From: Nageia nagi
Lineage: Eukaryota; Plantae; Pinophyta
NCBI GenBank assembly: GCA_050084985.1
Contig: JBITNC010000002.1
Coordinates: forward strand, 26,226,001 to 26,290,000
Direction: 5' to 3'
DNA: 64,000 nt
The translations under genes were made by a program, and so were the position numbers. Of this stretch, positions 26,801-64,000 are shown one piece after another. Below the pieces are notes generated by a model. That model was not told the DNA's origin and did no database searches. It saw only the letters and a list, made by a program, of their open reading frames with translations. Position 1 is the stretch's first letter, and each line of letters begins with the position of its first letter.

Positions 26801-29800
26801 CTGTTCCAAAACTTCGTGGAACATAGAAAATTCCCCATTATCATATTGCTCCTTTTGTTTTTGTTCAAATGCGAGAAACAACACTCCTAATGTTGCTGCC
26901 ATTCCATTTAGTTGATTGCCCATGGTTTGTTGGTATTGTATCCCAGATTATCTTTCCCATTATTTTATTTTCCTTTCCTTTTGCTTGGATCTTTATCATC
27001 GTGGCATAATTCTTCAACTTGAGTTCCATTGAAGTTTACCTCACTTATTGATGTTTGCTGGTTTTGCATATCATGTTGATTCTATAGAGTTTTGTGTTGT
27101 TGATTGGGATATCTTTCTTCCCATGTGTTATTGTTTCTCATACAAACTTCATTCTACTTGAGATTTGTTTTTCTTGTCAATCTACATTTTTCTTTTTCCA
27201 CACTTTTGTGATTGGATGGATAGCAATTTTGTCCATCAGTAATGCTTTTAGCTTTTGGATCTTGTGTTTGCCTTACCCTAGGGTGTTGTTGGAGATATGT
27301 ATCATTTTGATTGTTTGGACGAAATGATCAAAATGAGATAAATCTCCTGAAAGGGTTTTGAATTTCTGGATCTTTCCTTAGCTTTACTTGGGGTGTTGTT
27401 GAAGATATATGCTATTTTCATCGTCTTGATAGAGCAATCAAAATGAGATGAGGTTTCCTAATTTTTTTACAAATAACCCTATCTCTTCTTTCGGTGCCTA
27501 GTATAACCTAACCAATTACAAGAAAGCTAAAAACAAATAAATTCATTTCAATTAGAGCTACATGGTAATGACGTTGCAAATCCTTAAAGAGTTCGCTTTC
27601 TACAAGCCTTTGTTCTGCGCCAATTTACCAAAAACTAGCCTTCCCTTGGTAACTAAGATTGTTTCTCTTATACCACTTGTAAAAAAACAATTTAGCTCAT
27701 AGGAGAGTACTCGGCAAAAACTCGACACTAAAACTTGGGAAAAAAACCTCGAACATTTCAAAATATGAAAAATTACAGAATATGAAAAAATTACAAATCA
27801 ACGGTGAAGCTTTTCAAATTGATACTCAAACTTCAATCTTTCACAAACTGATCTACAAAGTGAAAAATTGAGCTAACACATGGAATGAGAAGAATGAGAT
27901 ACAATTAGATAGTTAAAAGGCATATTTTTGTGTTTACTATATTTTTTTCATGTTTTTTAGCTCTATTTTGATAGTAGTCGAGTAACGTCCAAAAACCGCT
28001 AGGCCGAGTAATGACCTCCGATTACTAGTTTTGCCTCCAAATCGCGGTTACTTGCAAGTACTCGTGGATTTTCGAACCAGGATATTGCTAATAAATTAAT
28101 AATATTAACTTCACTCAAGAAAACTACGACTTAGTGTTCTTGATATTGCTAATAATTTGTTTTATATATATTTATTATATTTTAATGTTATTGTACCTCT
28201 AGTGTGCCCAAAATCTGGCCCAAGTTTTCCTCATCTCAAGGACACATCTCATCATACCTGTTCCAAAACTTCGTGGAACATAGAAAATTCCCCATTATCA
28301 TATTGCTCCTTTTGTTTTTGTTCAAATGCGAGAAACAACACTCCTAATGTTGCTGCCATTCCATTTAGTTGATTGCCCATGGTTTGTTGGTATTGTATCC
28401 CAGATTATCTTTCCCATTATTTTATTTTCCTTTCCTTTTTGCTTGGATCTTTATCATCGTGGCATAATTCTTCAACTTGAGTTCCATTGAAGTTTACCTC
28501 ACTTATTGATGTTTGCTGGTTTTGCATATCATGTTGATTCTATAGAGTTTTGTGTTGTTGATTGGGATATCTTTCTTCCCATGTGTTATTGTTTCTCATA
28601 CAAACTTCATTCTACTTGAGATTTGTTTTTCTTGTCAATCTACATTTTTCTTTTCCACACTTTTGTGATTGGATGGATAGCAATTTTGTCCATCAGTAAT
28701 GCTTTTAGCTTTTGGATCTTGTGTTTGCCTTACCCTAGGGTGTTGTTGGAGATATGTATCATTTTGATTGTTTGGACGAAATGATCAAAATGAGATAAAT
28801 CTCCTGAAAGGGTTTTGAATTTCTGGATCTTTCCTTAGCTTTACTTGGGGTGTTGTTGAAGATATATGCTATTTTCATCGTCTTGATAGAGCAATCAAAA
28901 TGAGATGAGGTTTCCTAATTTTTTTACAAATAACCCTATCTCTTCTTTCGGTGCCTAGTATAACCTAACCAAATTACAAGAAAGCTAAAAACAAATAAAT
29001 TCATTTCAATTAGAGCTACATGGTAATGACGTTGCAAATCCTTAAAGAGTTCGCTTTCTACAAGCCTTTGTTCTCGCCAATTTACCAAAAACTAGCCTTC
29101 CCTTGGTAACTAAGATTGTTTCTCTTATACCACTTGTAAAAAAACAATTTAGCTCATAGGAGAGTACTCGGCAAAAACTCGACACTAAAACTTGGAAAAA
29201 AACCTCGAACATTTCAAAATATGAAAAATTACAGAATATGAAAAAATTACAAATCAACGGTGAAGCTTTTCAAATTGATACTCAAACTTCAAATCTTTCA
29301 CAAACTGATCTACAAAGTGAAAAATTGAGCTAACACAATGGAATGAGAAGAATGAGATACAATTAGATAGTTAAAAGGCATATTTTTGTGTTTACTATAT
29401 TTTTTTCATGTTTTTTAGCTCTATTTTGATAGTAGTCGAGTAACGTCCAAAAACCGCTAGGGCCGAGTAATGACCTCCGATTACTAGTTTTGCCTCCAAA
29501 TCGCGGTTACTTGCAAGTACTCGTGGATTTTCGAACCAGGATATTGCTAATAAATTAATAATATTAACTTCACTCAAGAAAACTACGACTTAGTGTTCTT
29601 GATATTGCTAATAATTTGTTTTATATATATTTATTATATTTTAATGTTATTGTACCTCTAGTGTGCCCAAAATCTGGCCCAAGTTTTCCTCATCTCAAGG
29701 ACACATCTCATCATACCTGTTCCAAAACTTCGTGGAACATAGAAAATTCCCCATTATCATATTGCTCCTTTTGTTTTTGTTCAAATGCGAGAAACAACAC

Positions 29801-32800
29801 TCCTAATGTTGCTGCCATTCCATTTAGTTGATTGCCCATGGTTTGTTGGTATTGTATCCCAGATTATCTTTCCCATTATTTTATTTTCCTTTCCTTTTTG
29901 CTTGGATCTTTATCATCGTGGCATAATTCTTCAACTTGAGTTCCATTGAAGTTTACCTCACTTATTGATGTTTGCTGGTTTTGCATATCATGTTGATTCT
30001 ATAGAGTTTTGTGTTGTTGATTGGGATATCTTTCTTCCCATGTGTTATTGTTTCTCATACAAACTTCATTCTACTTGAGATTTGTTTTTCTTGTCAATCT
30101 ACATTTTTCTTTTTCCACACTTTTGTGATTGGATGGATAGCAATTTTGTCCATCAGTAATGCTTTTAGCTTTTGGATCTTGTGTTTGCCTTACCCTAGGG
30201 TGTTGTTGGAGATATGTATCATTTTGATTGTTTGGACGAAATGATCAAAATGAGATAAATCTCCTGAAAGGGTTTTGAATTTCTGGATCTTTCCTTAGCT
30301 TTACTTGGGGTGTTGTTGAAGATATATGCTATTTTCATCGTCTTGATAGAGCAATCAAAATGAGATGAGGTTTCCTAATTTTTTTACAAATAACCCTATC
30401 TCTTCTTTCGGTGCCTAGTATAACCTAACCAAATTACAAGAAAGCTAAAAACAAATAAATTCATTTCAATTAGAGCTACATGGTAATGACGTTGCAAATC
30501 CTTAAAGAGTTCGCTTTCTACAAGCCTTTGTTCTGCGCCAATTTACCAAAAACTAGCCTTCCCTTGGTAACTAAGATTGTTTCTCTTATACCACTTGTAA
30601 AAAAACAATTTAGCTCATAAAGAAATCTAGCATAGCAGTCCATAATTTGCACAAATATACTATTGAAGATTAGCAATATACTTCAAATAGCAATAACAAA
30701 CATAGAAACAAATATATCAAATAAGAAATCAACAATTTAGCCATTTGAGAGGGCATAGACTCCAAATGTGTGCCAGCATAAGGTGAGGAAAGAAATATGT
30801 TATTTGATGATCATGACATTCACAATACCACCTATTTGTAAACTTAAAGGTCACTAACACTAATCCCCAAAGTTGTAAGAATCGGAATCGGATCAGAATC
30901 GTTTGGTTGAAGGATTCAGATTAATTGAAAAATGGATCGGATTTGGTGAAAAAATCGGCAAATAAGAAAAACATTCCAAATCAAATAACACATTACACTG
31001 TGAAAACATAATGTACAATTGAAAATTGTAGAGTTTTCAGTTTTGTATTACACAAGTTTGAATTATAGTAGTAAAACTGTGAAATTATATAGTACTAAGT
31101 AAATATATAAATTAAACTTTGACATGATTCAAATCAAAATGCTAAAAGTGAGTATAAAATGAAGTGTGTTTGTCTTTGCATGCATATATAGTGTCACTTT
31201 TGTTAGGAGGTGAAGTCAATATCCATATTTTTGATTGTCTTCTGCATGGATGTGGCAGTATGGTGGTGCACCTCTTGATGAGCCTCTTTTTCCCTTCTGT
31301 ACAAATATTTTTTCAGATTTTTTATTACAAATTGGCGATTTTCCCATCGATATTTGCATCTCCTCTTAGCTCCTCTCAGCTTGTGGTTGCAAGCAAAAGT
31401 GAAAGTCGATAGAGAATCATGATTTTTGCATCAGGAATCGTGATTTTTTGCAAAATCTGAATCACAATTTTTTTCAAAAAAATTGCCACGTCAGGAAAAA
31501 ATTAAAAATCTCGAATCAGTTTTCAAAAAATTGACTAGGCTCCCGATTGCGATTCTGGTCCGATTTTACGGATTAATAGGCAATTTTTACAATTATGCTA
31601 ATTCCTATGCTCCATGGTCGACCTTAGTACTATGAATCCTGTTCTAAGCATGCAAGCCAATCAAATAGAATATTGGCTATAGTTAATGCTTAGTTATTGG
31701 GGACATTACATCTTGGAATGATATTATGGAAGTTATACTTCTACCAACGCATGTTGTTCATTTTATGGATTTAGAGGATGTTTTAGACCAGACACCTGTT
31801 ACAGAGCTTTCTAACGATCTAGAAAATATAGGTGATGGGGATTGTTCTTCAGATTCTCATGAGCCTTACATTGTTGTCACAAAGGCGTTGGAGATTAATC
31901 ATGTGGAATGCAAGTATGACGATATGGTCTTTTCAACTTCATCTTTAGATTGCACTGATGATGAGATGGGTAGTGAGGATAGTGGAGGATATTTATAGTG
32001 GTGGTGGTGGGGATGATGCAAATAGAAATACAGGTTAAGATAGGCCAGTGATATTTGTGAGAACAATCCAATTTAAAGGAGTATCTGAAAGCCTCACAAG
32101 TTATTAGTTGTGCACCAATTTTTGAAATCCAATCATGTACTCTAAATATTTTGGCATTCTTTACCGTCATTTTGCACTTTATGGATGCTTGAGTTAAATT
32201 GTTGGTTATTTCTTTAAGGATGAGAGTGATGCTTTAAGAGTTGTAGATGTGTGAGCTTGGAGTTATCTAGCGTCAGGAGCAAACGAGCTAGATATTTGGT
32301 CAGCATTAACAGCCATTTTTGAAATGTGAGTAATCCAAAAGTAATCAAACAGAAGATATCTGCTAAAGCCTGCGGTATGACCATTTGAGAAATTCTGCAA
32401 TAGTGTTCTTAGAGCATTAGAGGTTGTTGTTAAGGATATAGAGGTGTTGAGAACTGAAACAGATACTCAGGTGACCTCCTGCATGTGTCGATCATAGAGT
32501 TGCAGCCTTTGAGCTTGAGAGTTTTATCAGCTCCACTCCAGCTGTTCAACTGAGCTTGAGCTTTCAACATGTGAAGCTTCCAGTGCGAGACTGTTGCAGC
32601 AAACATTAGATTTTAACTTCTCTAAACTTATTTTGAACTTGTAAAATTTCACTCTTTTGCATAGCATAATAAAATTTGAAATATTTTTAGCTTATAATAA
32701 TTGTTATTATTTGTGAAGCATTTATGATAATTTCGACTTACATGTATTTATACATTTCATCGAATACTGATATATTGACTTTTAATTTTATTCATGGTGG

Positions 32801-48399: not shown

Positions 48400-49030
48400 T
48401 GATGAGTTGAGACTCCTAGTGTGAAGAGATCTACATTACTATATTGACGACCACCTCATTAAAAAGGAGGATTGTTTAATCCCTTGTTGTCTCCTTTTCC
48501 CCTTTGCAAGAAAAAGTGGTTAATAGGCCTTTTTTTGTGAAAGTGTCTACTATGTCGCACCCAACAGGGTTTCATCGTAATACATCCTTCGTTCAAACCT
48601 CCTTGGTTGAGGGAGCTCGTAAGAGATAAAGAGACGACTCTCTTCAACGTACATGTTGCTCCAGAAGATGCCTCCAGGACACCCATGCCTCTCCGAGGAC
48701 TCACCAGATTTTATCCTTATCCTCCAACAACGATGCCATAGCCACAACCTATAGCGACCAATGAGCTCCCTTGCCAATTGCGCAATTGAGAGTGCTCACA
48801 TGCTCTCTCCTAGAGAGGTCTAGGATGGTTCCCCATTGACCGTTCTATGTGATGTCTCTTTCCTAGTTTAGGATTTTGACCCCCACTTTGTTTCGTTTTA
48901 GTTGGTTTATGTTATTTTATTTCTAGCTTTAGGATGGGCCTCTTAGGGGCCTGCCTTGCAATTTTACCACTCTTGTACATTCTAGTCCCATTGTCATCTT
49001 TTGGTCATTCATGGACATTAATATATTTTG
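48400..49030 (+). mobile_element. 5'-truncated 3' end of an RTE-like LINE
   Basis: 48982-49022 CTAGTCCCATTGTCATCTTTTGGTCATTCATGGACATTAAT matches the - strand 3' end of the LINE at 54091-54131 (CTAGTCCCATTGACCGCTTTTGGTCACTCGACGACATTAAT). Left boundary approximate. Confidence 0.7.
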
Positions 49031-49490
49031 TTTCTGTCTGTCAACATATAGATGACCATCACTTTCCAGCTGTGATATTGTAGCCATCAATATCACAAGA
49101 AAGCCTATCACGATTGGCATTTCTGTAGATGGCCATCTGATTAGCATTTCTGTTGTCATGATTTTGCTACCAAGAAGTGTAAAACTCAAAGCTTTATAAT
49201 CGATACAGATAAGTAGCCATGCACATTCATTTACTTGTACAAAACAAGAAAGCTTATAGGGCCAAGCAAACATCTCGAGACCAATTAGTTTTATGCAGTG
49301 TTCCACGGGGACGCATTCCCCCTCCTGGAGGAGCCGTTCCCGACGTTCCCACATTTTGGGAATGCGGGAACGCCTTGGGAAACGTTTCCCAGCCGTTCCC
49401 CTTTTGGGGGACGGCTGGGGGCCGTTCCCGAGACGGCTCCCGGGGAAGGGGGAACGTTCCCCAACCGTCCCCCTGATCGGGAACGGCCCG

Positions 49491-49600
49491 GGAACGGCTG
49501 GCCGTCCCCGGGAACGGCTGGCCGTCCCCGGGAACGGTTGGCCGTCCCCGGGAACGGCTGGCCGTCCCCGGGAACGGTTGGCCGTCCCTGGGAACGGCCG
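49491..49600. repeat. hAT subterminal 20-bp tandem repeat, about 5.5 copies
   Basis: GGAACGG(C/T)TGGCCGTCCCCG; each unit quasi-palindromic; probable transposase binding sites. Confidence 0.9.
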
Positions 49601-50130
49601 CCGTTCCCTGACCGTTCCCGGGGACGTCCAGCGTTCCCCGCCCGGCTGGAGAGCTTAAAGCTAAAAAAAACAGGATTCACTTAAAAAAAAAGTTTTTAAA
49701 CCTCCTAGCATGGGTCCCACCTAACTTTGCACCCCCCTTAACCCTAAAAAGCTCCTCTAAAAGGCTAAAAGTGATTTTGTTATCATTTGTCTTTGTGTAG
49801 AGGAGAAAGACAGCAAAGAGGAAGAGAAAGACAGCAAACAGAAGAAAAAAAACAGCAGTGAGGAGAAAGAGCAAGGAGGGAGGAAGAGAAACATAGCAGT
49901 GAGGAGAAAGAGCAAGGAGGGAGGAAGAGAAACACAACAGTGTAGTGGAGAAAAGCCAAGGAGGAGAAGAAAATTACCTAGCATAGTCCAAGGTTTTTAA
50001 TTTTCTGTTTCTCATTCTCTACTTGTTTAGTTTAAATTTTAAACTTTACTTGTAGTTTAAAAAAAAAAAACAGTCCAAGATGAGTGATATTGAGGAAGAA
50101 AATCAAAGCTATGAGGTATAAACATCACAA

Positions 50131-52757
50131 ATGGGAGTTGAAAATGAGCAAGAAAACACATCAGTCTTTGATTGCCCATCCACAATGTTAAAACATTTTG
50201 CTAAAGGCCCATTTAATCGTAAAAAACCACTGTTACAGTTTGTCACAAACCTAGATGCTGGGAAAAAGATTGAAGGGGGAGCAAGAACTTATAAATGTCA
50301 CATTTGTAACTCCACATTTAAAGGGAGTTATACTAGGATTGAATCACATTTGACTGATAAACAAGGGGCAGGGGTGAGGGTTTGTAAAGAAATGAATAAA
50401 TTTATGTTTGCAGAAGCTAGTAGACTTGCACAAGAGGCTTACCTTAGGAATCATGGGCCGGCCATTCCTAAATCTACCCAAGCCTCCATTGTTTCCTCCT
50501 CCTCATCAGTTAGAGAAAAAGAAATTGGACTCTCTTCTAGCTTGCCAAGTCCTACATTCCCCTCCAAAAAAAGAGGAAATATAGCTGAAGCATTAAACTT
50601 GCAGCAGAAAGAGAGAGCTGATGATGCAGTGGGAAGATTATTTTATGCACATGCCTTGCCTTTTCATCTTGCACGCTCACCTTACTTGAGGGCAGCATTT
50701 GAAGAAGTAAGGTTGGCTGGACCTTCATATGTACTACCTGGCGAGACTAGACTCCGTACTTCTATTTTGGAGAAGCAGTATAGTAGATGCAGTTTGATGA
50801 TGTCGGAGATGAAGGCTACATGGGTGCGTAGTGGATGTTCCATTATTATGGATGGATGGACTGACATTCGTCAACGTCCACTCATCAATATAATGGTGTC
50901 ATGTTCAGAGGGTCCTTATTTTCTTCGAGCTGTTGATTGCTCGGGAAAAAAAAAGGATGCAGAGTTCCAGTTCCTCCTGTTGAAGGAGGCTATTGAGGAG
51001 GTTGGATCCTCCAATGTTGTCCAGGTAATCACTTTACTAAGTTTAAATTTTAAAACTTTAAACTTTACTTTTAGTTTTCTAATTTATTTTTTGACATTTG
51101 TTGTAAAAATGCCAAATGGCAAACTGTAACGTTTTAATTTTTTTTGTACAGATAATTACAGATGCAGCCTTGGTTTGCAAGTGTGCAGGAAAATTGATAG
51201 AGGGCACTTACAGGCATATTTTTTGGACCCCATGTTGCGTTCATGCATTGAATAATGCATTGAAGGAAATTGGGAAAATAGATTGGGTGAAGAATGTTGT
51301 TGCAGAAGTGAGAGACTTGCAAATGTTTATTTGCAACCATCATACCTCATTGGCCCTCTTTCGCTCCTTCTCAAAGGAGTTTCTTAAACCTGCAGATACG
51401 AGATATGCCACTTATTTCATCCTATTGCAAAGGATGATTGAGGTGCAGGAGTCACTACAATCCATGGTAGTTTGTGTAGAATGGAAGAGGTGGCCAGAAT
51501 CTCAAACACAGGAGGGAAAAAGACTTAGAGATAAAGTCTTGGATGAGAATTGGTGGACTGAAGCCAGGTAACAAAGTTTGAAAGTTTCACTATTGTAGTT
51601 TGAATTTCAAGTTGGATTGGTCATTAGGTAATTGTTCAATTAGATTTAACTTTCTAAGTTTTTTACCTCTTTTTTTTTTTGAATGTAGGTACATTGTATC
51701 TTTTATTTCCCCAGTTTTTGAAGTGATAAGGTATGCCGATACGGATTCTCCTAATTTAGGAGAGATATACGAGACCTTCGATAGCATGCTTGGGGAAATG
51801 AAAAGAATAATTAATGCCAAAGATCCTTCTTTTTATGAAGGCCATATTAGACCCATCATAGAGAAGAGGTAACAAAAACAAATGTTGATTGTTAACTTTA
51901 GAGTTTAGTTTCAATTTGGTTTGTTAACTTTTGTCTTTAAGTTTATTAAATTATTTTTTTTAACTTTTTGTAGGTGGAATAAAATGAATACCCCTCTCCA
52001 TATGGCTGCCCATGTGTTGAACCCAAAATGGTATGCACCAAAGATTGGGAAAATGGCACCTAATGATGATGTTGAGTTGAAAGATGGGTTCATGAACTTC
52101 CTTGCCAAGATGTTTTCACGAGAGGATGGTCGTATAGTTAGAGAGGAGTTTGTAAAATTTGTGAAACTTAAGGGTCCTCGTTTTAGCAGGCAAGAGTGCA
52201 AGGAGGATAGGGCTAACATTGCCCAAACTGATCCCATTGGATGGTGGGAGCTATATGGAGATGATGCTCCACACTTGAAGCATCTTGCGATTAGGCTCCT
52301 TTCCCAGGTTAGTAGATGCCATTGCCATGCCATTAAGTATTGTACTATGCTCCTTTCTCACATAATCAAAAATGAAAAATCTAATTTGAATGATTGTTTG
52401 TAGGTGGGTAGTTCATCTGCTGCGGAGAGAAATTGGTCTACCTATGGCTTCATCCATAGTCTGCGAAGGAATAGACTTACTTCTCGTAGAGCAGAGAAGT
52501 TAGTTGCAGTGCATAGCTCTCTTCGCCTTAGCGAGAGAGTTACGCCAGAGTATAGAGCTAGTCCAGCTGCACATTGGGACATTGATCCAGTGGAGGCAGG
52601 CCAACTTGAGGTTGATGATGATGAGGCTGATGAGTCGATGTTTGGATTGCCATTGCATACTCTTCATTTGGATGATGAGAGCATATCGTCAGATAGCTCA
52701 ATAGATGAGGAGGATATGGATGCACAACCATTAGCACATGAGCCTATAGATCCATAG
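50131..52757 (+). CDS. hAT transposase, 725 aa; join(50131-51024,51152-51567,51689-51868,51974-52307,52404-52757)
   Basis: Four GT-AG introns give an uninterrupted 2178-nt ORF. BED finger CHIC...H, catalytic MDGWTD and ITDAA, CxxH (PCCVH), dimerisation region with AERNWS. Confidence 0.93.
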
Positions 52758-54078: not shown

Positions 54079-56503
54079 GAAAGAAAGAAATTAATGTCGT
54101 CGAGTGACCAAAAGCGGTCAATGGGACTAGCATATGTACAGTCATGTTCAAATAACCAACAAAGCCCTTAGTGGGCATCATCTAAAGAGAGCATAAAGAA
54201 AGAGACCTAGACCAACACCACTACGTGAAAGATCCCGACCCTAGAGGGCGGGGTACAAAAACTGATACACCCAGAGGGAGGTTGTTCTGAGCCTCTCCGG
54301 AGGGAGAGTGTGGCGGCACTCTCTGCTCTAGAGAGGGGTCATGCTGATCTTTGGGAGATGTTTGAGGTACTGTTGCTAGAGGAGGAGGAGGAAATAATTT
54401 GTCAATCTCTTGACAAATCCTGCATGCTCTGAAGATGTCTCCTGGTCCAACATAGTTGCTGAAGGTGCTGCTCTCGGCGTCTCCTATGGGCTCCCTTAGG
54501 GGAAGAAGCTTAGAAGAAGGATGTAATGCGTCAATCTCCTAATGGTTGTTGGGTTCGAGCTAGAAGACATCTCCGTAGGGAGGAGGTCTCTCGAAAATAG
54601 AGAGCTAAGCAACGTTGATCGGGATACCAGAGGAATGTGGCCAATGAGTTGTGGGAGTCACGGAAGAGGCAATGGTAGTGACCCCAAATCTCATATAGAC
54701 CAAACATTGAAAGACAAAGTGGTCCTCTATTTCGATCTCAAGAGAGCACAGGTGGCAGACTCGCAGGTCCCTAGCTAAGTGATGATCTATCTCAACTCTG
54801 ATTCAGTGTGAGCATACCCGAAACTATTCGAGGGACATCTTTAATCCAAGGGGGAGATGCAAGTTGATTTATCCCGATGGAAGGATCAAAGCCCCATCTA
54901 ACTAAAGGTAATGTCGGCATAGTGATCCAACTTGGGCGTCAACGATTGAGGGGGATAAACCTAAGTGGTCTGGATGAAAGCCCTATAGATCACCTCTTGA
55001 ATCATTTTCAGAGTTTGTTAAAGTCTAAGCCGAACCCATTGGTGGTGAAGGCAATCTATCATGATAAAACCCAAATCTCGAAAGCATCGTGAAGATTTTG
55101 GCAAACCAACAACGATGACAGCCCTAGGCAACCAAATTGATTGAGGAGGCCAAAGCTCTCGCAGGGAGCCTATCTATATCGATGATCAGATAGACTCTAG
55201 AGGCAACGAAGGAAGAGGACTATGGAAGCAAAGGCCCATACCAGAAGAGGTTTGCAACCTAACTCCACAAGCATGACAAGGTGTGGGATTGTCCTCTTAC
55301 TCTTAATGAAACGAGATAGGAAAGAGACCAATATCCTCTCTATCGAGGTCCAATCTACTGCTTCCAATCTGGAACCCCAAATCTCAATCTTATATAGGGC
55401 TTCAGGAATGAAAAATGTTTGGAACAATTCTAGCTTGGATAGAATGTCCTGAAAATGTAATTGGATGCACTACCTCTCAAGGGTGGATACTGTCGCATAA
55501 CCTCGATTCACTCGAGAAGAGCACTCCCAAGTAGGTGTAGGATAAGTTAGTCTCTATAGTGTTGTCGTTGAAGGTGAGTTGGGTTTGGTACAACATGGCT
55601 TTCAAAACATTGAAGGCCACTACCTTAGTCTTGCTAATGTTCACCACCAGCTCATGTCTAGCATTGAAAGTAGTTAATGCATCTATCAATCCTTGGAGAC
55701 CCATGACTGAATGGGAAAGCAACACAATATCATCAACAAAAAGCAAGATGGGCACCTGGTTGCCATAGAGAAGGTAACCAAATCCAGGATCTGTGGTCTC
55801 TAGGATGAAGGAATCCAACTCATCAATGTAAAGGCCAAATAGAGTCGGGGAGAGAGGGCAATCCTGCTTCACCCCAATCATAATAAGAATATTGTCGAAG
55901 AAGCCATTTGAAGTGCGAATACGACGAGAAAGAGTCTCATATAGAGTCAAAATAGCTACTAATCCAATCTTCGACACCCCCAAGCATCGTAATCGGTCCA
56001 TAAATTTGTGTCAAGGAACAATGTCGAAGGCCTTCTTGAAGTCTACAAAACAACAAAATATTGGAGACTTTCGGAATCTAGCCTCCTCAATAATGGCTTG
56101 AAGAGTGAAAATGTGATTTGTGGTGCAATGGTCTCTACAGAACCCCTCCTGACGTACAGCTTAGAACCCTTTGGTGTCGGCCATTCGTGAAATGTACTCC
56201 TCTAGGACCGTGGCATATAGCTTGGCCAAGGTGTGATCAATCATGATCGTGCAATAGTTGCTCGAGTCATGGGGTCACTGGATTTGAAGATGGGATGGAT
56301 GATATTTGTGGTCCAAGAAGAGGGAAAACCTGAGCAAATAACATTGTTGAAGAGCATCGTGAGGAAGGTGGAAAGGGTATGAATGGCATGTTTGAGGCAT
56401 TCGGCTTGAAGGTTCTCAATGTTAGGGGCTTTTCCAGCATTAAGTCTTTGAATGGCGGAATGGATGAGATAGGGGAAAAGAAGTCTAAGGAGAGAGGGTG
56501 GGA
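54079..56503 (-). mobile_element. Degraded RTE/RTEX-like LINE, interrupted at its 5' side by the Copia
   Basis: ORF 55477-56001 has GVKQDCPLSPTLFGLYIDEL, LLFVDD, VNISKTKV, YTYLG. Upstream IIHPIFKS and NYCTIMI. 3' tail is (TTTC)3 rather than poly(A). Confidence 0.85.
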
Positions 56504-56960
56504 TGAAGGATTTAGTCCTACTCTAATCCTCAAGGTCCAAGACTAGGAAACTCAACCATTCAACATAACACAAATATAATGTGGTTCCTCCCTCCTTGGG
56601 AGTACATCCACAACTAGTTCTCTATTCTCAATCTATGCACCTCTTACAACAATTCTCTTCCTCTCCTACACAACTAGTAGAGTAATCTTACTCCAAAAAC
56701 TTAGTTATGTTACAAGAGGAGAGGCCCTCTATTTATAGCTTGAGAGCATCTCCCTAACCTCCCTTTAACCCAAGGGTAAGGTTAGGGTTACAATAAATGT
56801 ATCACCTAACTTTAACCTACCAACGAACCACATGGTAAAGTCAAAGTCTACATAATAAAGAATTCAATTAATCCCTTAAGGTATCTACATATCCTTTAAG
56901 TGATTAATTGAATTTACAAGCAGTTTAGATATTCACAATATTTCATTACAAATTCTAACA
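56504..56960 (-). mobile_element. Copia 3' LTR (~457 bp)
   Basis: - strand TGTTAG begins right after PPT TAAGGGGGAG (56961-56970); TATA CTATAAATAG near 56730-56739; ends ...CCTTCA at 56504 where LINE coding sequence resumes. Confidence 0.8.
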
Positions 56961-57444
56961 CTCCCCCTTAATGCAATATTGGGATAGAGCGTAGAAGAGA
57001 GAAGAGAGAGAGTAAGAGAGTTCTCCTCCATAGAGATACAAGTGGAGATGAGAACATTTACATATTTGAGAATCTTTTTGAGAACTAGTATGAGACTCAC
57101 TACATCACCATTTGACAAAATGGTTTACAATACAATCATTAACCACAACTGGTTTCACTGTACATAGTAGTCGATCAACTTTAAGCTGACATGTGAGTCT
57201 CCATGAGCTTGCTTACACAAGGTGAGTAACCTGCATTTCTGAAGAAGATCCTGCATGCTACAAGCAACTCATGAACAAAATCAGTTAGATGCATCATATA
57301 TTCATTTTATTAATAAGAGAATCAAATAATGCCATCTTATAAATAACTGATCAATGGTACACTATAAGTTATCACGGAGATGCCAAGCCATCACTCATAG
57401 TCACCTGTTGTATATAGACATGTGTTGATTTTTAATAGAGCATA

Positions 57445-57650
57445 AAAAATTGTACAAGTTTCTCACGCAGAGCAAACTTACCACGGAGGTATAGAATGTA
57501 CAAGAAGTTCCTCACGCAGAGTGAACTTACCACGGAGGTATATCAATTATATGCTCAAAAAATTGTACAAGTTTCTCACGCAGAGCAAACTTACCACGGA
57601 GGTATAAAATGTACAAGTTTCTCACGCAGAGCAAACTTACCATGGAGGTT
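57445..57650. repeat. Four ~45-50 bp direct repeats in the Copia 3' UTR
   Basis: TGTACAAGTTTCTCACGCAGAGCAAACTTACCACGGAGGT with minor variants. Confidence 0.9.
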
Positions 57651-57721
57651 TAAAATAATCAACACAATATAACAACAAAAAAAGGCCTCTTAGAGGTGAA
57701 GTTGTCATCACTAACAAAAGT

Positions 57722-60700
57722 TCAAACTTCACTCCCCCTTGAGGGCAACTTCACCAACCCGAGAGAATCCCTAAGCTTGTTGAACTGAGCTTCAGGAAGG
57801 GGCTTGGTGAATAAATCAGCGGAGTTGTCAGTAGATGGACAATACTTCAAGTGTATGATGTCATCTAGAACCTTCTCCCTGATAAAATGGGCTTGGATTT
57901 CCACATGTTTGGTTCTTTGATGGAAGACAGGAGTCTTAGCCAAAGAGATAGTCGATTGATTGTCTGAAGAGATAAGAGATGGGCCATTTTGCTCATACCC
58001 AATTTCGTTCAGAAGATGCCTCAGCCAAATAGCGTCTTGGGCGGCAACAGACATGGCTCGATATTCGGCTTTGGTGGTAGAAAGAGTCACAGTAGGTTGC
58101 TTCTTGGAAGCCCAAGAGATAGCACCTGAACCAATGCTGAACACATATGCAGAGGTTGATTTTCTATCATCTCTATCTCCCCCATAATCAGAATCTGAGA
58201 TCCCGGAGAGAACAATCGAGGGCACTTTGGAATACTTAAGAGCAAGATCCTTTGTCCCTACCACATACCTCAAGATTTGTTTAACAACATTGAGGTGTTC
58301 AACATATGGTTTTTGCATGAATCGTGCCATCAGATTCACTGCAAAGGCAATATTAGGACGAGAGATAGTCAGATACAGAAGACTACCGATCAATTGCCTA
58401 TAAGCTGTAGCATCAGCCAACTGAGAATCTGAGCTCAGTGATACAACGATTCCAGAAGAAACAGGTATTGCAGCATATTTACACTCCTCCATTCCAAACT
58501 TTTGCAAGATGTCTGATATATACTTAGATTGACTAAGATAAGTACAATCTTTGTGTTGGTATACTTGCATCCCAAGATAGTAATGCAATAGACCTAGATC
58601 AGTCTTTTCAAATGTTGCCTTCAGTTTGAAGATGCACTCTTGGATGATTTCAATATTATTGCCAGTTATGAGAAGATCATCCACATAAAGGAGAATTAAG
58701 ACCACGTCTTTTCCTTGATTGAGTACATAGAGATCTGAGTCAGAGAAGCACTTGGAAAAACCAATATCTGCGAAGAATCCTGAAATTTTCTTGTACCATG
58801 CTCTAGGTGCTTGCTTAAGTCCATACAAAGACTTCTTTAGCTTGCACACAAGAGACTCTTTTCCTTCTGGAATAAATCCTTCTGGTTGATTCATGTAGAT
58901 TTCTACATCCAAGTCACCATTGAGAAATGCACTCTTGACATCAAGTTGAAAAGTTTTCCATCCTTGAGCTGCAGAAAGAGCAAGGATTATCCTGACAGTA
59001 GGCATCTTGGCCACAGGAGCAAAGGTTTCCTCATAATCAATACCATATTTTTGAGCGAATCCTTTGGCTACTAACCTTGCTTTGTATTTTTCAATTTTTC
59101 CATCAGAATTGTACTTGACCTTGTATATCCATTTATTTCCAATCACATTTTTCTCATTGGGATAAGGAACCAAATCCCAAGTTTCATTTTTCATGAGCGC
59201 CTCATACTCAACTTTCATAGCTTCCATCCAACACTCTTGCTTGGAAGCTTCTTTGAAGGTTGATGGCTCATTCGTATTATCAATTTTGGCAAATAAAGAG
59301 TTATTCAAGGTCATACTCGTAATTCTCTGAGCTGGAGAATTTTGCTCTTGTGGTGACTTCCCTACATGATCATCCAACCAGTTAGGTGCAGGCGAAGAAT
59401 CATCTGAATCAGACACCTCAGCATGAGAGGTCGTATCCTCAGGAAGTTCATTGAACTTGACATCCCTAGAAACAAAGACTATTTTATGGGATGAGGAGTA
59501 GAGCCTGTAACCTCTATGCTGATTATCATACCCCACAAAGATGCATTTTTCTGATCTTTTATCCAACTTCTTTCTTTTCTCTGAGGTAATGAAGGCAAAT
59601 GCATCACAACCGAAGACCCTAAAGTGTGAGAGGTTAGGTTTCTTTCCTTTCCATGCTTCATACGAAGTTTTACCTTCAACTGCTTTAGTAGGACACCTAT
59701 TTAGGGTGTGAATAGCAGTGTGAATAGTTTCTCCCCATAAGAAACTAGGAAGGTTACCCAACATGCACCTTGCCATTTCCATAATGGTTTGATTCTTCCT
59801 TTCAGCAACTCCATTTTGCTGAGGGGTGTAAGGGATTGTGAATTGCCGCTTGATCCCATGTTTAACACAATAGTCGTTAAACTCATTGCTATTATACTCA
59901 CCCCCATTATCAGATCTCAGCATCTTGATCTTAAAATCAGTTTGATTTTCAACAAGAGCCTTGAAGTCTTTAAACCTATCAAAAGTTTGATCCTTGTGCT
60001 CAAGTAGATAACCGAATGTCATCCTACTGAAGTCATCAATGAAGGTCAGAACATAAGAAGCTCCCCCTAGAGACTTAGTCTGAAATGGACCCATCAAATC
60101 TGAATGCACAAGCTGAAGAGGACGAGTAGCCCGAGTTGCCTTATCTTTTTCAAACTTTTGCCTATTCATCTTTCCTAGAATGCACCTTTCACAGAGACCA
60201 ATTGTGGGTGAAATATTAGGTAAACCTTCCACAAGTTCTTGAGTTTTCATATCTTGAATACTCTTGTGGTTAAGATGCCCTAATCGTTGATGCCAAAGAT
60301 TGCCCTTTGAACAAACATTTGTAGCAAGACACATTTTTGAAGGAACTTGATCCACAATATAAAGGTCATCCTTTACTGATCCTTTCATGAAGGTGGCAAG
60401 TCCTTTCTTGACACACTAGGAGTGTGAGGTAAACTCAAATGAGTATCCTTTCCTTGTAATCTGAATTACGGAGATAAGATTCATCTTTAGTTTAGACACA
60501 TAAAAGACATTATTAAGAACCTTTCCATGAATCTTCACACTCCCTATTCCTTGAACATCAAGAACTGTTTTATCACCTATCACAACTGCATCCTTTTTGT
60601 ACTTATGAAAATTTTCAAACTTATTCTTTTCATAACACATGTGATTAGTGCATCCTGAATCAACAATCCAATCATTTGAAACAGTTTGAGTCATTGAGTA

Positions 60701-61635
60701 GTAGGCAACAGTAGCAGCATGCTTGTTCTTCTTTTTATTATTGAAATTTCTCACATTTGCATTTCCCTTGCCTTTTTGAGCAAATTTCTTTTTACGACAA
60801 TCATACTCTTTGTGCCCAAAGATGCCACAAAAGTTACAATTTCCATCAAACTTTTCCTTAGGTGTTGGATTGCTTGATCCAGCTTTGTCATTCCTTTGCA
60901 TGAAGTTGCCATTATTGTTGCCCTTTTTCTCATACTTCCTGAAGGTAGATGAGGACTTGTTATCTTTGAATTTATAATGTTTGAACTTCTTCTTGAAAGG
61001 AGTTTTGGTTGCTCCTAGAGCAATGCTATTGTCTTTTAGAGAAAGGTTCAACATTTTCTTATTCAAAGTTTTCTCATGCTTCAGAAGGAGTCTAGAGAGG
61101 TTATCAAGAGAGATGACATCTTCTTCATCGTTGAGCCTTGTTTCCATAACCGTGACAAAGTTACTGAACTTTGTAGAAAGGCTTTGAAGAATGATGAAGA
61201 CCATGAACTCATCATTGATCCAGTTGCACCTACAGCCAACCAGTTGTGTCCTGAGGTCAATGATTTTGTTCAAGTAGATAGAGGCACTTTCATCTTCACC
61301 TTGACGATATTGCAACAACTTTTGTAAAATGGTGAACCTCCTTGAAAATTTTGACCCAAGGTAAATTTTCTTCGGCCTATCCCAAGCTTCCTTTGCTAAT
61401 GTTGAAGAAGAGATCATGAGAAGGACGTCATCTGAAACTGCACAATAAATCATTGAAGTTGCTAACTCATTCTTTGATTATATATTTCAAGAGCCTTCTC
61501 ATCGGTAGGAGCGACCAAGTCTTCATTAACTGTCTGCCACAGCTTTCTTGCTTGTAACTCAGCTTTCATACGAGGTTTCCATATTCCAAAGTTGGAACCG
61601 TCGAGTATATGCTTGGGTATGAAGGTTTCAACCAT
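57722..61635 (-). pseudogene. Copia gag-pol with two lesions
   Basis: ATG at 61635; 1-nt frameshift near 61473; zinc knuckle CNFCGIFGHKEYDC; protease WIVDSGCTNH; in-frame TAG at 60416-60418 (likely from TGG); open 888-aa INT-RT(YVDD)-RNase H to 57722. Confidence 0.93.
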
Positions 61636-63147
61636 TGCTACAAAAAAGTAAATAAGCAAGAAATGAATAAATTTTTACAATTTACCATCTATACAAATCA
61701 AACATCTAATAAGTAAACATGTCCCACATGTGCAAACTTATAAACCACGATCTGTAGAAGGATAAAGTTGAGGTTGTTTTTTTGTATAGAATTAGGCCTT
61801 CACCTGGATGCCCGCAAGGTGGAGCCCAGGTACTACCAGTCCTCAACCAGTTCACCTTGGTCAATAATATACTCTCACAAGGAGAAGTACTAACTATTTT
61901 CCAAGGATTCGACGTATCTTGGACCGGCCATTTTAATTATCCTTTTAAGGTTTTCAGTTTTCCTCCTAGGTTATCAGGATAATCCTTGAATGGACGTGGG
62001 GACATGTGGTATCACTACACACATGCCTGTCCACCTAATAGAGTTATGTCCAATCCAACAGAGGCCTTAGGGGCAATTAAAACGGACTTACCACCACTTG
62101 GTTCTTCGGACTAAAAAGGCTCTAGTCTGCCCTATCCTCACCTCGTGGCTCCCCAAACAAGTCATGTTGTGGAAGAATACGTGCGGATGTGTTCATTTTA
62201 GGGGTTACTTTCAATATTTTGTGTTTTGCAAGTATAAAACAATTGTGCAAAAATATAAAGTAACAATACATCATCCACACGAACTTGAAACCTTAAGAGT
62301 CCAATGGGTTTTGTACTAACCCCTAAAGGACTTTTTACATTTTGCATACTTTTGCTCAAGTTCAAAAATTCATTAAAACACTTTAATGAATTTTTAAAAG
62401 GCTAAGTTCTACTTAGCATTAATCTATAACTTAAACATGCATTATTCCATGACTTAAAATTAAGTAATAAACATGCATCATGCATTATTTAACTTAAAAT
62501 TTTAAGTACTAAGCATGCTTTATTCCTAACAAGGTTAAGAAGCATGCATTATAAATTTAGCATGCAAGATCCAGCTAGATAAAGATTTAAGTAAAAAATT
62601 ATACAAATTCCCCCCTTTTTTTACTTAAAGTTATAAAACTTGGATGCTAAAAAATTTCTTTTAAGTATGGTTCCTCCCTCCTTTTCACTTAATGTGTTTA
62701 TCCCTAAAAAAGTGGTCTTTGAAGTATGCATTTTAAGTAAATATTGCCTTTGTTTACTTAAAAATAGCATAGGTTTTTAGGAAAAATCCCTTAAATGTTT
62801 AATTTAGACCTAGACATAAAAAAATCAAATCCCTTTGTAGTTGGTAAAAAAAATTAAGGCTCAACAACTATTATGGAAAAATATGGAAAGATGGCCATGT
62901 GTAAGCCGCGTGGAGGTTGAGAGGCTGGGCAGAGGCGGCAGGGGAGACCAAAGTGAGTAGAAGGGCGGTGAAGGTGGCAGGAGGAGGCCACGGAGGGCGG
63001 TGGAGGCGGTGAGTCGCGTGGGGCGGCTAGACGGCTATTGACCATCCCAGCCGCGAAGATGCGAGCGAGGAAGGAGGGAGGGGCGTGTTAAACAGCAGAG
63101 GATGACGTGGTTGTGTTTTTATATAAAGATATCCGTAGGCATTCGAT

Positions 63148-63199
63148 CAATAGTGGGGATGGTGGTAACAATCTCTCCCAGTTTCAACTTATACAGGAT
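63148..63199 (-). pseudogene. ARF1: Captured fragment of a class-I ADP-ribosylation factor (ARF GTPase) coding sequence
   Basis: - strand ATC CTG TAT AAG TTG AAA CTG GGA GAG ATT GTT ACC ACC ATC CCC ACT ATT G encodes ILYKLKLGEIVTTIPTI, the invariant ARF1 segment between the P-loop and switch I. Confidence 0.9.
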
Positions 63200-63319
63200 T
63201 GCTCGGAGTTTGAAAGAGATGCACGGGTTTATTCAAAATCGATCGATCGATTCGAGTGCAAATCCCAGCAAGCTGGACGGAAGAAGTACTACTACTGCGC
63301 CATATCCTTCTCGTTTTGT

Positions 63320-63645
63320 TTGTGCATATCCTGCGATCATTGCAGTGAACCAGACTGTATCGTGATGAGGCAAAAAACAATTCGCAGTCCCTTGCAACGT
63401 ATCCGGTTTGTGCATTCGACGTAGTCGAGCTGGCGAGGGAGGAGGCTGCGGGGGAGGCATTCAGTGCATATCTTGTGATCATTGAAGTCCAGGAAACGCT
63501 ATCTGCATCATGCAAACAATTCGCACACCATCCCTACGCTTCCGCCATGGACGTGGAGTTGGAGGCGGTCGTGCGACAGAGGCCGCTGCGGGAGGAGCCA
63601 CCATTGCAGTCCATAAGACTACAGTTCGACGAGGCAGTCGAATGA
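63320..63645 (-). pseudogene. Three PLS-class PPR gene fragments with GC-rich linkers
   Basis: LPRRTVVLWTAMVA (~63597-63642); ELF..MHDADSVSWTSMITRYALN (~63459-63545); CELF..PHHDTVWFTAMIAGYAQ (~63320-63415). Confidence 0.8.
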
Positions 63646-63671
63646 AAAAAAAAAAAGGAATGGGTGATGGA

Positions 63672-63779
63672 TGGTGTGCATAACGAGATTGTATTGTGAT
63701 ATACATTGTAGAAATTGCAATTATCGTGTTCTTGAGGAGTGTGGGGCCTCACACGGATTCCAACCCATATGTTCTCCAT
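63672..63779 (-). pseudogene. Captured kinesin motor N-terminal fragment (kinesin-7-like)
   Basis: MENIWVGIRVRPHTPQE...YNVYHNTISL resembles the plant kinesin-7 start MEKICVAVRVRP...WKVEDNRISL (recalled). Confidence 0.6.
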
Positions 63780-63855
63780 TCCAATATGTTGCAGGTATCT
63801 GGGCTCTGCTCTTCTGCTGATGGCAAATTGAAGACGGAAGAAGTGTGGTATAGCT

Positions 63856-63985
63856 CCCTGTGATCAGTGCAGTCCACGAAACTGTCTGCATCATGCATCG
63901 TGTCAAACAATTCGTGTGCTTTCCCTACGTTTCCACATTTTGCATGCAAGTCGGCGAGGCATTTTGTCAAACAGTTCGCATGCCA
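63856..63985 (-). pseudogene. PLS-class PPR fragments
   Basis: ACELFDKMPRR, then DLHAKCGNVGKAHELFDTMHDAD, frameshift, VSWTALITG. Confidence 0.85.
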
Positions 63986-64000
63986 TTTTATTTGACCCCC

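Follow-up and report, generated by a model that had tools for sequence, protein, structure and literature searches.

For gymnosperms, a survey from 2026 reported about 400,000 gene fragments captured by transposable elements (TEs) per genome, Copia examples and donor-gene methylation included (PMC13477047). In the Platycladus orientalis study, 13.7% of the host TEs carried at least two fragments and early exons were preferred; methylation of the fragment-bearing TEs was not reduced (PMC13477047). That captured fragments may come into epigenetic conflict with their donor genes is an already published hypothesis and was tested in that study (PMC13477047); the silencing or decoy role suggested in the original prediction would correspond to it. 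Here, a block of gene pieces found upstream of a Copia gag gene, in a host that is probably a gymnosperm, was compared with these and other known systems.

The window, i.e. the whole stretch of 64 kb that was analysed, shows as its outstanding feature a CpG-island-like patch within otherwise CpG-depleted TE DNA (Table 1). A GC-rich block of about 1.1 kb had been predicted upstream of gag and was confirmed: at 62881-64000 the GC content is 0.50 and the CpG o/e 0.90, whereas the window as a whole has values of 0.37 and 0.39. For gag/pol a CpG o/e of 0.28-0.29 was calculated, and for the 3' LTR 0.08. At 62880 the value increases in a sharp step from 0.09 in the AT-rich spacer to 0.90 in the block, and a second composition break is located at 62250. 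The block starts about 1.25 kb upstream of gag, and the end of the window (64000) falls within it. Its first ~220 nt (62881-63100) have a GC content of 0.63 with a G-rich plus strand. Due to the CpG contrast between the block and the Copia genes, the block appears to have had no part in the long-term mutational history of the element. No homology was found for the spacer, and neither the leader nor the block has a second copy elsewhere in the window. Rfam and tRNA scans of 61400-64000 gave no genuine match. The block has no coding capacity; a plus-strand ORF covering the ARF piece and one PPR piece had no match in a protein search.

Table 1 Features in and around the CpG-rich block (columns: feature, positions in the window, strand, evidence or description)
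LINE reverse-transcriptase remnant, cut by Copia 3' LTR	55480..56503	-	Pfam RVT_1 7.5e-11 for 55480-56001
Copia 3' LTR (TG...CA)	56504..56960	-	read from sequence
Copia pol ORF (integrase, RT/RVT_2), 888 aa	57722..60388	-	Pfam RVT_2 3e-78, rve 2e-17, gag_pre-integrs 2e-14
Copia gag-protease	60416..61635	-	Pfam Retrotran_gag_2 4e-16, Pol_BBD 3e-24, DUF4219 1e-6
Candidate 285-nt 5' LTR of second retroelement (TGTCCCAC...GTGGGGACA)	61720..62004	+	TG...CA, 8-nt terminal inverted repeat; weak
PBS-like TGGTATCACTAC	62007..62018	+	9/12 vs tRNA-iMet PBS, first 8 exact
AT-rich spacer	62251..62880		GC 0.27, CpG o/e 0.09, degenerate TACTTAAA / CATGCA motifs
Left part of CpG-rich block	62881..63148		without detectable gene homology
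ARF GTPase piece ILYKLKLGEIVTTIPTI (ARF1 residues 33-49)	63149..63199	-	PDB phmmer E 6e-5, 17/17 identical; Pfam Arf E 0.1
PPR piece 4 (...LPHHDTVWFTAMIAGYAQTKREG)	63305..63409	-	tblastn 30.8 bits vs shuffle mean 19.6, sd 1.7; PDB E 1e-3
PPR piece 3 (GSVGMVCELFA, frameshift, LHDADSVSWTSMITRYALN)	63459..63540	-	tblastn 58% identity/19 aa, Cryptomeria P0121; DNA repeat family D2
PPR piece 2 (FIRLPRRTVVLWTAMVA)	63596..63646	-	PDB E 1.2e-3; tblastn
PPR pieces 0, 1, 1b (GSNKMACELFDKMPRR; LADLHAKCGNVGKAHELFDTMHDAD; frameshift, VSWTALITG)	63856..64000	-	PDB E 1.7e-8; phmmer best 1.7e-35; tblastn

The block contains five pieces of PLS-class PPR and one ARF piece. In a tblastn search of the window with 150 natural PPR proteins as queries, all PPR matches were confined to 63305-64000 and none was detected on the plus strand. 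With phmmer, 573 PPR proteins among 1.84 billion proteins were matched at E<=0.001 (best 1.7e-35). Named PPR proteins of Cryptomeria, Ginkgo and ferns also support this family as the donor. In the PDB, different pieces matched synthetic PPR-DYW (E 1.7e-8, 1e-3 and 1.2e-3); for 63856-64000, PLS9-PPR (E 2.4e-8) was matched besides synthetic PPR-DYW (E 1.7e-8). The pieces show the signature DMYAKCG....A..FD.M..RD.VSW..MI.GY of the S/P1 junction of PLS-class PPRs, and all five represent the same motif, the end of the S repeat with the start of the next one (..CG....A.ELFD.M...D.VSW..MI.GY). Hence, one or few PPR donors are sufficient and repeated sampling is not needed. A plus-strand A13 run (63645-63657) adjoins PPR piece 2, and pieces 0, 1 and 1b reach the end of the window.

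The fragment mosaic described in the original prediction is mostly real. The pieces are 50-145 nt long (50-130 nt had been claimed); as claimed, they lie in differing frames and are found exclusively on the sense strand of Copia (minus strand). The linkers, as had also been stated, are without detectable homology: for 62880-63100, 63205-63300 and 63650-63850 the scores against PPR proteins were at shuffle level only. A PPR-likeness of 62907-62987 and 63219-63299, by which the ARF piece would be flanked by PPR to the left and right, was likewise at shuffle level and was rejected. At least three gene families had been proposed; PPR and ARF could be identified, but in searches of Pfam and PDB (E<=10) no kinesin was matched by any of the minus-strand pieces. 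The kinesin look-alikes IWVGIRVRP (~63790) and VQLAGICTRIDRS (~63250) were rejected due to the lack of Pfam and PDB support. Homology to ARF is limited to 51 nt, and an AG dinucleotide with a pyrimidine-rich run is located just upstream, which may represent a possible intron remnant.

A single old PPR pseudogene would be another possible source of PPR pieces with one strand, one orientation and the same S/P1 junction motif. Its appearance would be patchy because distant PPR proteins detect only the most conserved motif, and ARF would be a small later insertion. At the DNA level the motif copies share 71-77% similarity, as expected of intragenic repeats, and in Ginkgo P0141 and similar natural PPRs the motif runs every 31 aa. 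Nevertheless, we consider this explanation quite unlikely. The conserved Trp codons of successive pieces are 263, 122 and 139 nt apart, none of these distances being a multiple of three, and an intact PPR gene would have a spacing of 93 nt (S-S) or ~305 nt (P-L-S). In a test for a colinear array, order and strand of the pieces were in agreement with a PPR gene, but the spacing (31 aa for S-S, ~101 aa for P-L-S) was not. Pieces 0 and 1 adjoin although ~70 aa of the repeat unit are absent between them, and the linkers hold no PPR signal above shuffles. Furthermore, the pieces are not heavily mutated, as shown by 50-64% identity to natural PPRs of other species and by the high CpG content. The odd Trp spacing despite this identity indicates an assembly from short pieces and not a slow decay.

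The neighbouring Copia element shows the domain order Retrotran_gag_2, Pol_BBD, gag_pre-integrs, rve and RVT_2 (Pfam) on the minus strand. The gag gene starts with an ATG at 61635-61633, and its DUF4219 N-terminus is split from the remaining gag near 61460 by a frameshift and a stop. The pol gene is in frame with gag, with a single stop codon between them. A polypurine tract, AAGGGGGAG (56969-56961), adjoins the 3' LTR, and TGGGA at 56499-56503 is a candidate TSD. In the protein collection the closest relatives of the pol protein, found in many seed plants, are 42-49% identical and near relatives are absent; within the window no other copy of the element was found.

The LINE-like frame stays open up to the LTR boundary, with an Atlas lead to RVT_1 clusters at 0.93. 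For the N-terminal stretch of this reverse transcriptase up to the boundary no match was found in Pfam and PDB. From these sequence data, a LINE split by Copia is assumed with moderate, not firm, confidence; alternatively, a 5'-truncation of the LINE near 56503 is conceivable. Up to 64000, its upstream part is not found again. Therefore, the extra DNA is probably located inside the insertion complex.

According to the original prediction, the block is part of the long 5' leader (>2.3 kb) of Copia itself. Co-packaged mRNAs would have been captured by template switching of the RT, and the family would carry or renew this cassette. The sense orientation of every piece is consistent with such an origin, as is the LINE flank that is not resumed before 64000, and transduction of several gene pieces by an LTR element has a known example in Bs1 (PMC13317346). 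The prediction that neither LTR nor PBS lies between gag and block was only partly corroborated: this interval contains neither a 3' LTR copy nor a PBS on the minus strand, but a weak plus-strand signature resembling an LTR end and a PBS was detected at 61720-62018. The only match to the 3' LTR, a 16-nt polypurine identity between 56582-56597 and 62668-62683 (E 0.03), was rejected as an LTR remnant, as the flanks do not align. On the other hand, a leader of more than 2.3 kb is unusual for Copia, and it would be crossed by the sharp CpG and composition breaks at 62880 and 62250. The 3' LTR has no second copy within the window and no PBS (TGGTATCAGAGC on the minus strand) was found upstream of gag up to 64000; the 5' end of the element may lie beyond this position. 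The 51-nt ARF stretch with its upstream AG resembles an exon with intron flank more than spliced mRNA, and for five PPR pieces of one motif multiple independent captures are unnecessary. In general, we regard the leader explanation as rather unlikely. Carriage of the block by Copia is unproven and leans towards unlikely.

The missing 5' LTR and PBS could also result from a 5'-truncation of Copia by deletion or rearrangement, with the block as an unrelated neighbour. This neighbour would be a scrambled PPR pseudogene in which double-strand-break repair left a filler patch of ARF, or else the interior of a Helitron or Pack-type DNA transposon. The CpG content of the block is indeed gene-like rather than TE-like. 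Filler-DNA repair yields short same-strand patches with unassignable linkers, according to Wicker et al. (2010) as cited in PMC13477047, and multi-gene mosaics are carried by Pack-type TEs (PMC13317346). We judge this explanation to be rather doubtful. At its left edge, the block shows no recognisable TIR, TSD or Helitron end, and no inverted repeat involving this edge exists within the window. Moreover, DNA removal is slow in gymnosperm genomes (PMC13477047), and the deletion would have to be large, since the LINE half beyond Copia is absent from the window, too.

Between gag and the block, the plus-strand signature at 61720-62018 hints weakly at a second, nested element within the leader of Copia. 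Beside the candidate LTR, AAACA at 61715-61719 is a candidate TSD, and TGGTATCA at 62007 is positioned 2 nt past the LTR end. The composite of terminal repeat and PBS occurs in 28% of shuffled windows, with ~0.006 expected by chance in the 1.25-kb stretch. A nested element on the minus strand (PPT at 62622-62608, LTR from 62605 down to 61720) is unsupported, as purine runs of at least 13 nt number 68 in the window. Some observations speak against a nested carrier. The signature is weak, given its frequency in shuffled windows, the 9/12 match of the PBS and the lack of a second copy of the candidate LTR in the window. Furthermore, fragments that are all in Copia sense fit better to mRNA capture by RT into Copia RNA than to an antisense cargo of another element.

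Our preferred, albeit tentative, explanation sees in the block a genuine but inert patchwork of pieces from host genes, which was built by template switching and is most likely carried by a nested second element. In this patchwork, unassignable linkers join five PLS-PPR motif pieces and a single piece from an early ARF exon, all on one strand. We infer template switching during the copying of DNA or cDNA as the most likely builder, for which the repeated PPR motifs could offer the microhomology for template jumps. The acquisition would be recent enough, or its source unmethylated enough, for the CpGs to survive. The block would represent extra DNA between the Copia gag and an unseen 5' LTR, with the plus-strand element formed by the candidate LTR and the PBS-like motif as the most likely carrier instead of Copia's own leader. 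For this carrier the gene pieces would be antisense. Thus explained, the block would belong to the class of captured, TE-associated gene fragments with which gymnosperm genomes are filled.

A further-reaching idea is a gymnosperm Copia lineage with a 'cargo slot' in its leader. Short host exon pieces would be taken up repeatedly, would stay CpG-rich by escaping methylation-driven decay and would be transcribed, feeding small RNAs into a cross-talk with the genes for PPR and ARF. We hold this to be very improbable. If the block travels with the Copia family, it would be a neat case of LTR elements acquiring and shuffling exon pieces, and it would raise the question whether such cargo draws the very large PPR family and the housekeeping ARF into TE silencing. 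For the present, the block is a further example of a phenomenon that numbers hundreds of thousands per gymnosperm genome.

Compared with the captured fragments of Platycladus, the locus is similar regarding short exon pieces in TE-rich DNA beside or inside Ty1/Copia and Ty3/Gypsy elements. The early-exon preference found there is paralleled by the ARF piece, which covers residues 33-49. In contrast, the pieces are unusually short here (50-145 nt), a single repeated PPR motif accounts for five of the six, the CpG content of the block is high, as opposed to the unreduced methylation of fragment-bearing TEs in that study, and the carrier is only a candidate. Maize Bs1 also contains several unrelated host gene pieces on the same strand, for which RT-mediated capture was proposed (PMC13317346). 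Its three segments are, however, flanked by an identified LTR on either side and together constitute a chimeric ORF that is expressed (PMC13317346), whereas the block has no enclosing LTR pair in the window and no ORF. GC-rich exon pieces of multiple genes with non-homologous joins are shared with the mosaics of Pack-MULE, Pack-CACTA and Helitron elements. The differences are a visible (left) edge without TIRs, TSD or Helitron termini and pieces shorter than typical captures. Filler DNA from synthesis-dependent patching (Wicker et al. 2010, cited in PMC13477047) is similar in its short ectopic copies of multiple loci and its linkers. This mechanism needs no transposon ends, and copying at the DNA level would keep intron flanks.

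At position 62881 the composition of the window switches. From there to the window end, the block, a mosaic of host-gene pieces upstream of the gag of a minus-strand Ty1/Copia element, has a GC content of 0.50 and a CpG observed/expected ratio of 0.90, compared with 0.37 and 0.39 for the whole window. Thus, the predicted GC-richness was borne out. The CpG ratio amounts to 0.28-0.29 in gag and pol, 0.46 at 61635-62250 and 0.09 in the AT-rich spacer between gag and block (62251-62880). Hence, the block has had no share in Copia's long history of CpG loss. This CpG-island-like patch of gene scraps within CpG-depleted TE DNA is the sole feature that is mildly unusual. The spacer contains an AT-rich palindrome of 38 nt with 84% complementarity (62361-62398).

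Features at the right end of the window
Feature	Position	Strand	Remarks
LINE reverse-transcriptase remnant	55480-56503	minus	adjoins Copia 3' LTR; RVT_1 7.5e-11 at 55480-56001
Copia 3' LTR	56504-56960	minus	TG...CA ends, polypurine tract adjoining
Copia 3' region, 760 nt	after LTR/polypurine tract	minus	contains 49-113-nt tandem repeats
Copia pol ORF	57722-60388	minus	
Copia gag-protease	60416-61453	minus	
Copia gag N-terminus, frameshifted	ATG at 61635-61633	minus	
LTR-like segment, 285 nt	61720-62004	plus	starts TGTCCCAC, ends GTGGGGACA
ARF piece ILYKLKLGEIVTTIPTI	63199-63149	minus	17/17 identical to ARF1 residues 33-49; best PDB E 6e-5
PPR piece 4	63409-63305	minus	tblastn
PPR piece 3	63540-63459	minus	tblastn
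PPR piece 2	63646-63596	minus	tblastn
PPR piece 1, internal frameshift	63970-63856	minus	tblastn
PPR piece 0	63998-63951	minus	tblastn

For 63752-64000 a match to PLS-class PPR proteins was detected (synthetic PPR-DYW, E 1.7e-8). Among 1.84 billion proteins searched, 573 PPR proteins matched at E<=0.001 (best 1.7e-35); the closest were from Cryptomeria japonica, followed by ferns, a lycophyte and Ginkgo, which points to a probable gymnosperm host. With the best 150 of the 573 proteins, tblastn of the whole window confined the PPR signal to the minus strand at 63305-64000, in five pieces whose frames differ. All five cover the same part of the array, an S-type repeat end and the next repeat start (..CG....A.ELFD.M...D.VSW..MI.GY). 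In DNA these motif copies are 71-77% alike, as intragenic repeats are. Thus, a single PPR donor could supply all five, and repeated sampling of host transcripts, as originally proposed, is not required to explain them.

A simple decayed PPR pseudogene is unlikely. The conserved Trp codons are spaced by 263, 122 and 139 nt, none divisible by three; S-S repeats would give 93 nt and P-L-S repeats about 305 nt. About 70 residues of the repeat unit are absent between the adjoining pieces 0 and 1, the identity to foreign PPRs is 50-64%, and CpGs are kept. Short, well-kept pieces with wrong spacing point to assembly via template jumps. The repeated PPR motif would provide microhomology for such jumps, and the jumping polymerase could be a reverse transcriptase or a repair DNA polymerase. 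The ARF homology spans no more than about 51 nt; immediately upstream there are an AG and a run rich in pyrimidines. This is the appearance expected of an exon with intron flank and leans to DNA-level copying. The sole homopolymer, A13 on the plus strand (63645-63657), is on the wrong strand for the poly(A) tail of a sense mRNA and leans the same way.

Linkers 63650-63850 and 63205-63300 and the GC-richest left part (62880-63100) scored no better than shuffled sequence against PPR proteins and had no match in Pfam or PDB. The original prediction of frameshifted pieces, all on the Copia sense strand and joined by non-homologous linkers, agrees with these results. At least three gene families had been claimed; PPR and ARF were confirmed, so that two donor families are shown. 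Kinesin, as a further family, is not supported: IWVGIRVRP and VQLAGICTRIDRS look kinesin-like by eye, but the pieces containing them had no kinesin match at E<=10 in Pfam or PDB. These searches easily detected the 17-residue ARF piece.

The Copia element has a Ty1/Copia-type order of domains (Pfam), and its nearest relatives share only 42-49% identity (search of 5.8 billion proteins). This copy contains at least one in-frame stop and one frameshift and is therefore not young. Between pol stop and polypurine tract, a 49-64-nt unit occurs in four tandem copies with 74-98% identity (57444-57663). The tract core AAGGGGGAGTG is present twice, adjoining the LTR (56968-56958) and immediately before the pol stop (57741-57731). 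Furthermore, TGGTTCCTCCCTCCTT is a 16-nt exact direct match between 3' LTR (56582-56597) and spacer (62668-62683; BLAST E 0.03; flanks non-aligning).

The 3' LTR appears to interrupt the LINE at 56503/56504, and an open LINE-like frame extends to this boundary. For the N-terminal stretch near it, support is limited to an Atlas lead; Pfam and PDB searches gave none. The upstream half of the LINE is absent from the window. Since the LINE does not resume, the extra DNA is probably part of the insertion complex rather than its surroundings; that Copia is truncated, with the block as unrelated flank, we consider unlikely. Neither a second 3' LTR copy nor a minus-strand PBS was found anywhere up to 64000. 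These two observations and the sense orientation of every piece are consistent with the block as part of Copia's own leader. Such a leader would be longer than 2.3 kb, which is unusual for Copia, and the CpG discontinuity towards gag, pol and spacer argues against it, as does a plus-strand LTR/PBS-like signature between gag and block. We consider an own leader unlikely as well.

The predicted lack of LTR and PBS between gag and block holds for Copia's own LTR and a minus-strand PBS, but not for this plus-strand signature. Two bases past the LTR-like segment, the PBS-like TGGTATCACTAC matches the tRNA-iMet PBS at 9/12 positions, the first eight exactly. In 300 dinucleotide shuffles of the window the LTR/PBS composite was present somewhere in 28% of shuffled windows (0.32 per window; about 0.006 expected in the 1.25 kb between gag and block). 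The signature is a lead, not a finding. If real, a second short-LTR retroelement would be nested 85 nt upstream of the Copia ATG, with the block as antisense cargo inside it. A second element nested in the Copia leader and carrying the block is our tentative preference; other explanations are very improbable. The originally proposed mechanism is unproven and somewhat disfavoured.

Elsewhere in the window, a 1.46-kb unit (approximately) forms six head-to-tail copies, mostly 99-100% identical and spaced by 1457-1466 nt (22160-30731). This long-period tandem array is very young and was missed by TRF (longest period 500). A 61-nt tandem repeat has 4.9 copies (13323-13612). A GC-rich 20-nt repeat (49487-49598; 5.6 copies, 94% matches) lies within a second CpG-richer patch (49001-50000, CpG ratio 0.73). 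A hAT-type transposase remnant with two or three ORFs was detected at 50131-52403 on the plus strand (DUF659 1.5e-32 and 3e-16; hAT dimerisation domain weak).

A gymnosperm genome comparison of 2026 put the mean number of TE-captured coding fragments at about 400,000 per genome; in conifers, about 480,000 TEs bore fragments, and 13.7% of host TEs had two or more (PMC13477047). Captured fragments favour first and second exons and are exemplified in Ty1/Copia and Ty3/Gypsy elements (PMC13477047). Methylation of donor genes is higher (PMC13477047), which is the 'epigenetic conflict' that the original prediction had offered as inference. Since maize Bs1, it has been known that an LTR element can transduce several genes (PMC13317346). 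The gene-scrap mosaic beside Copia is thus a phenomenon already known and very common in such genomes.
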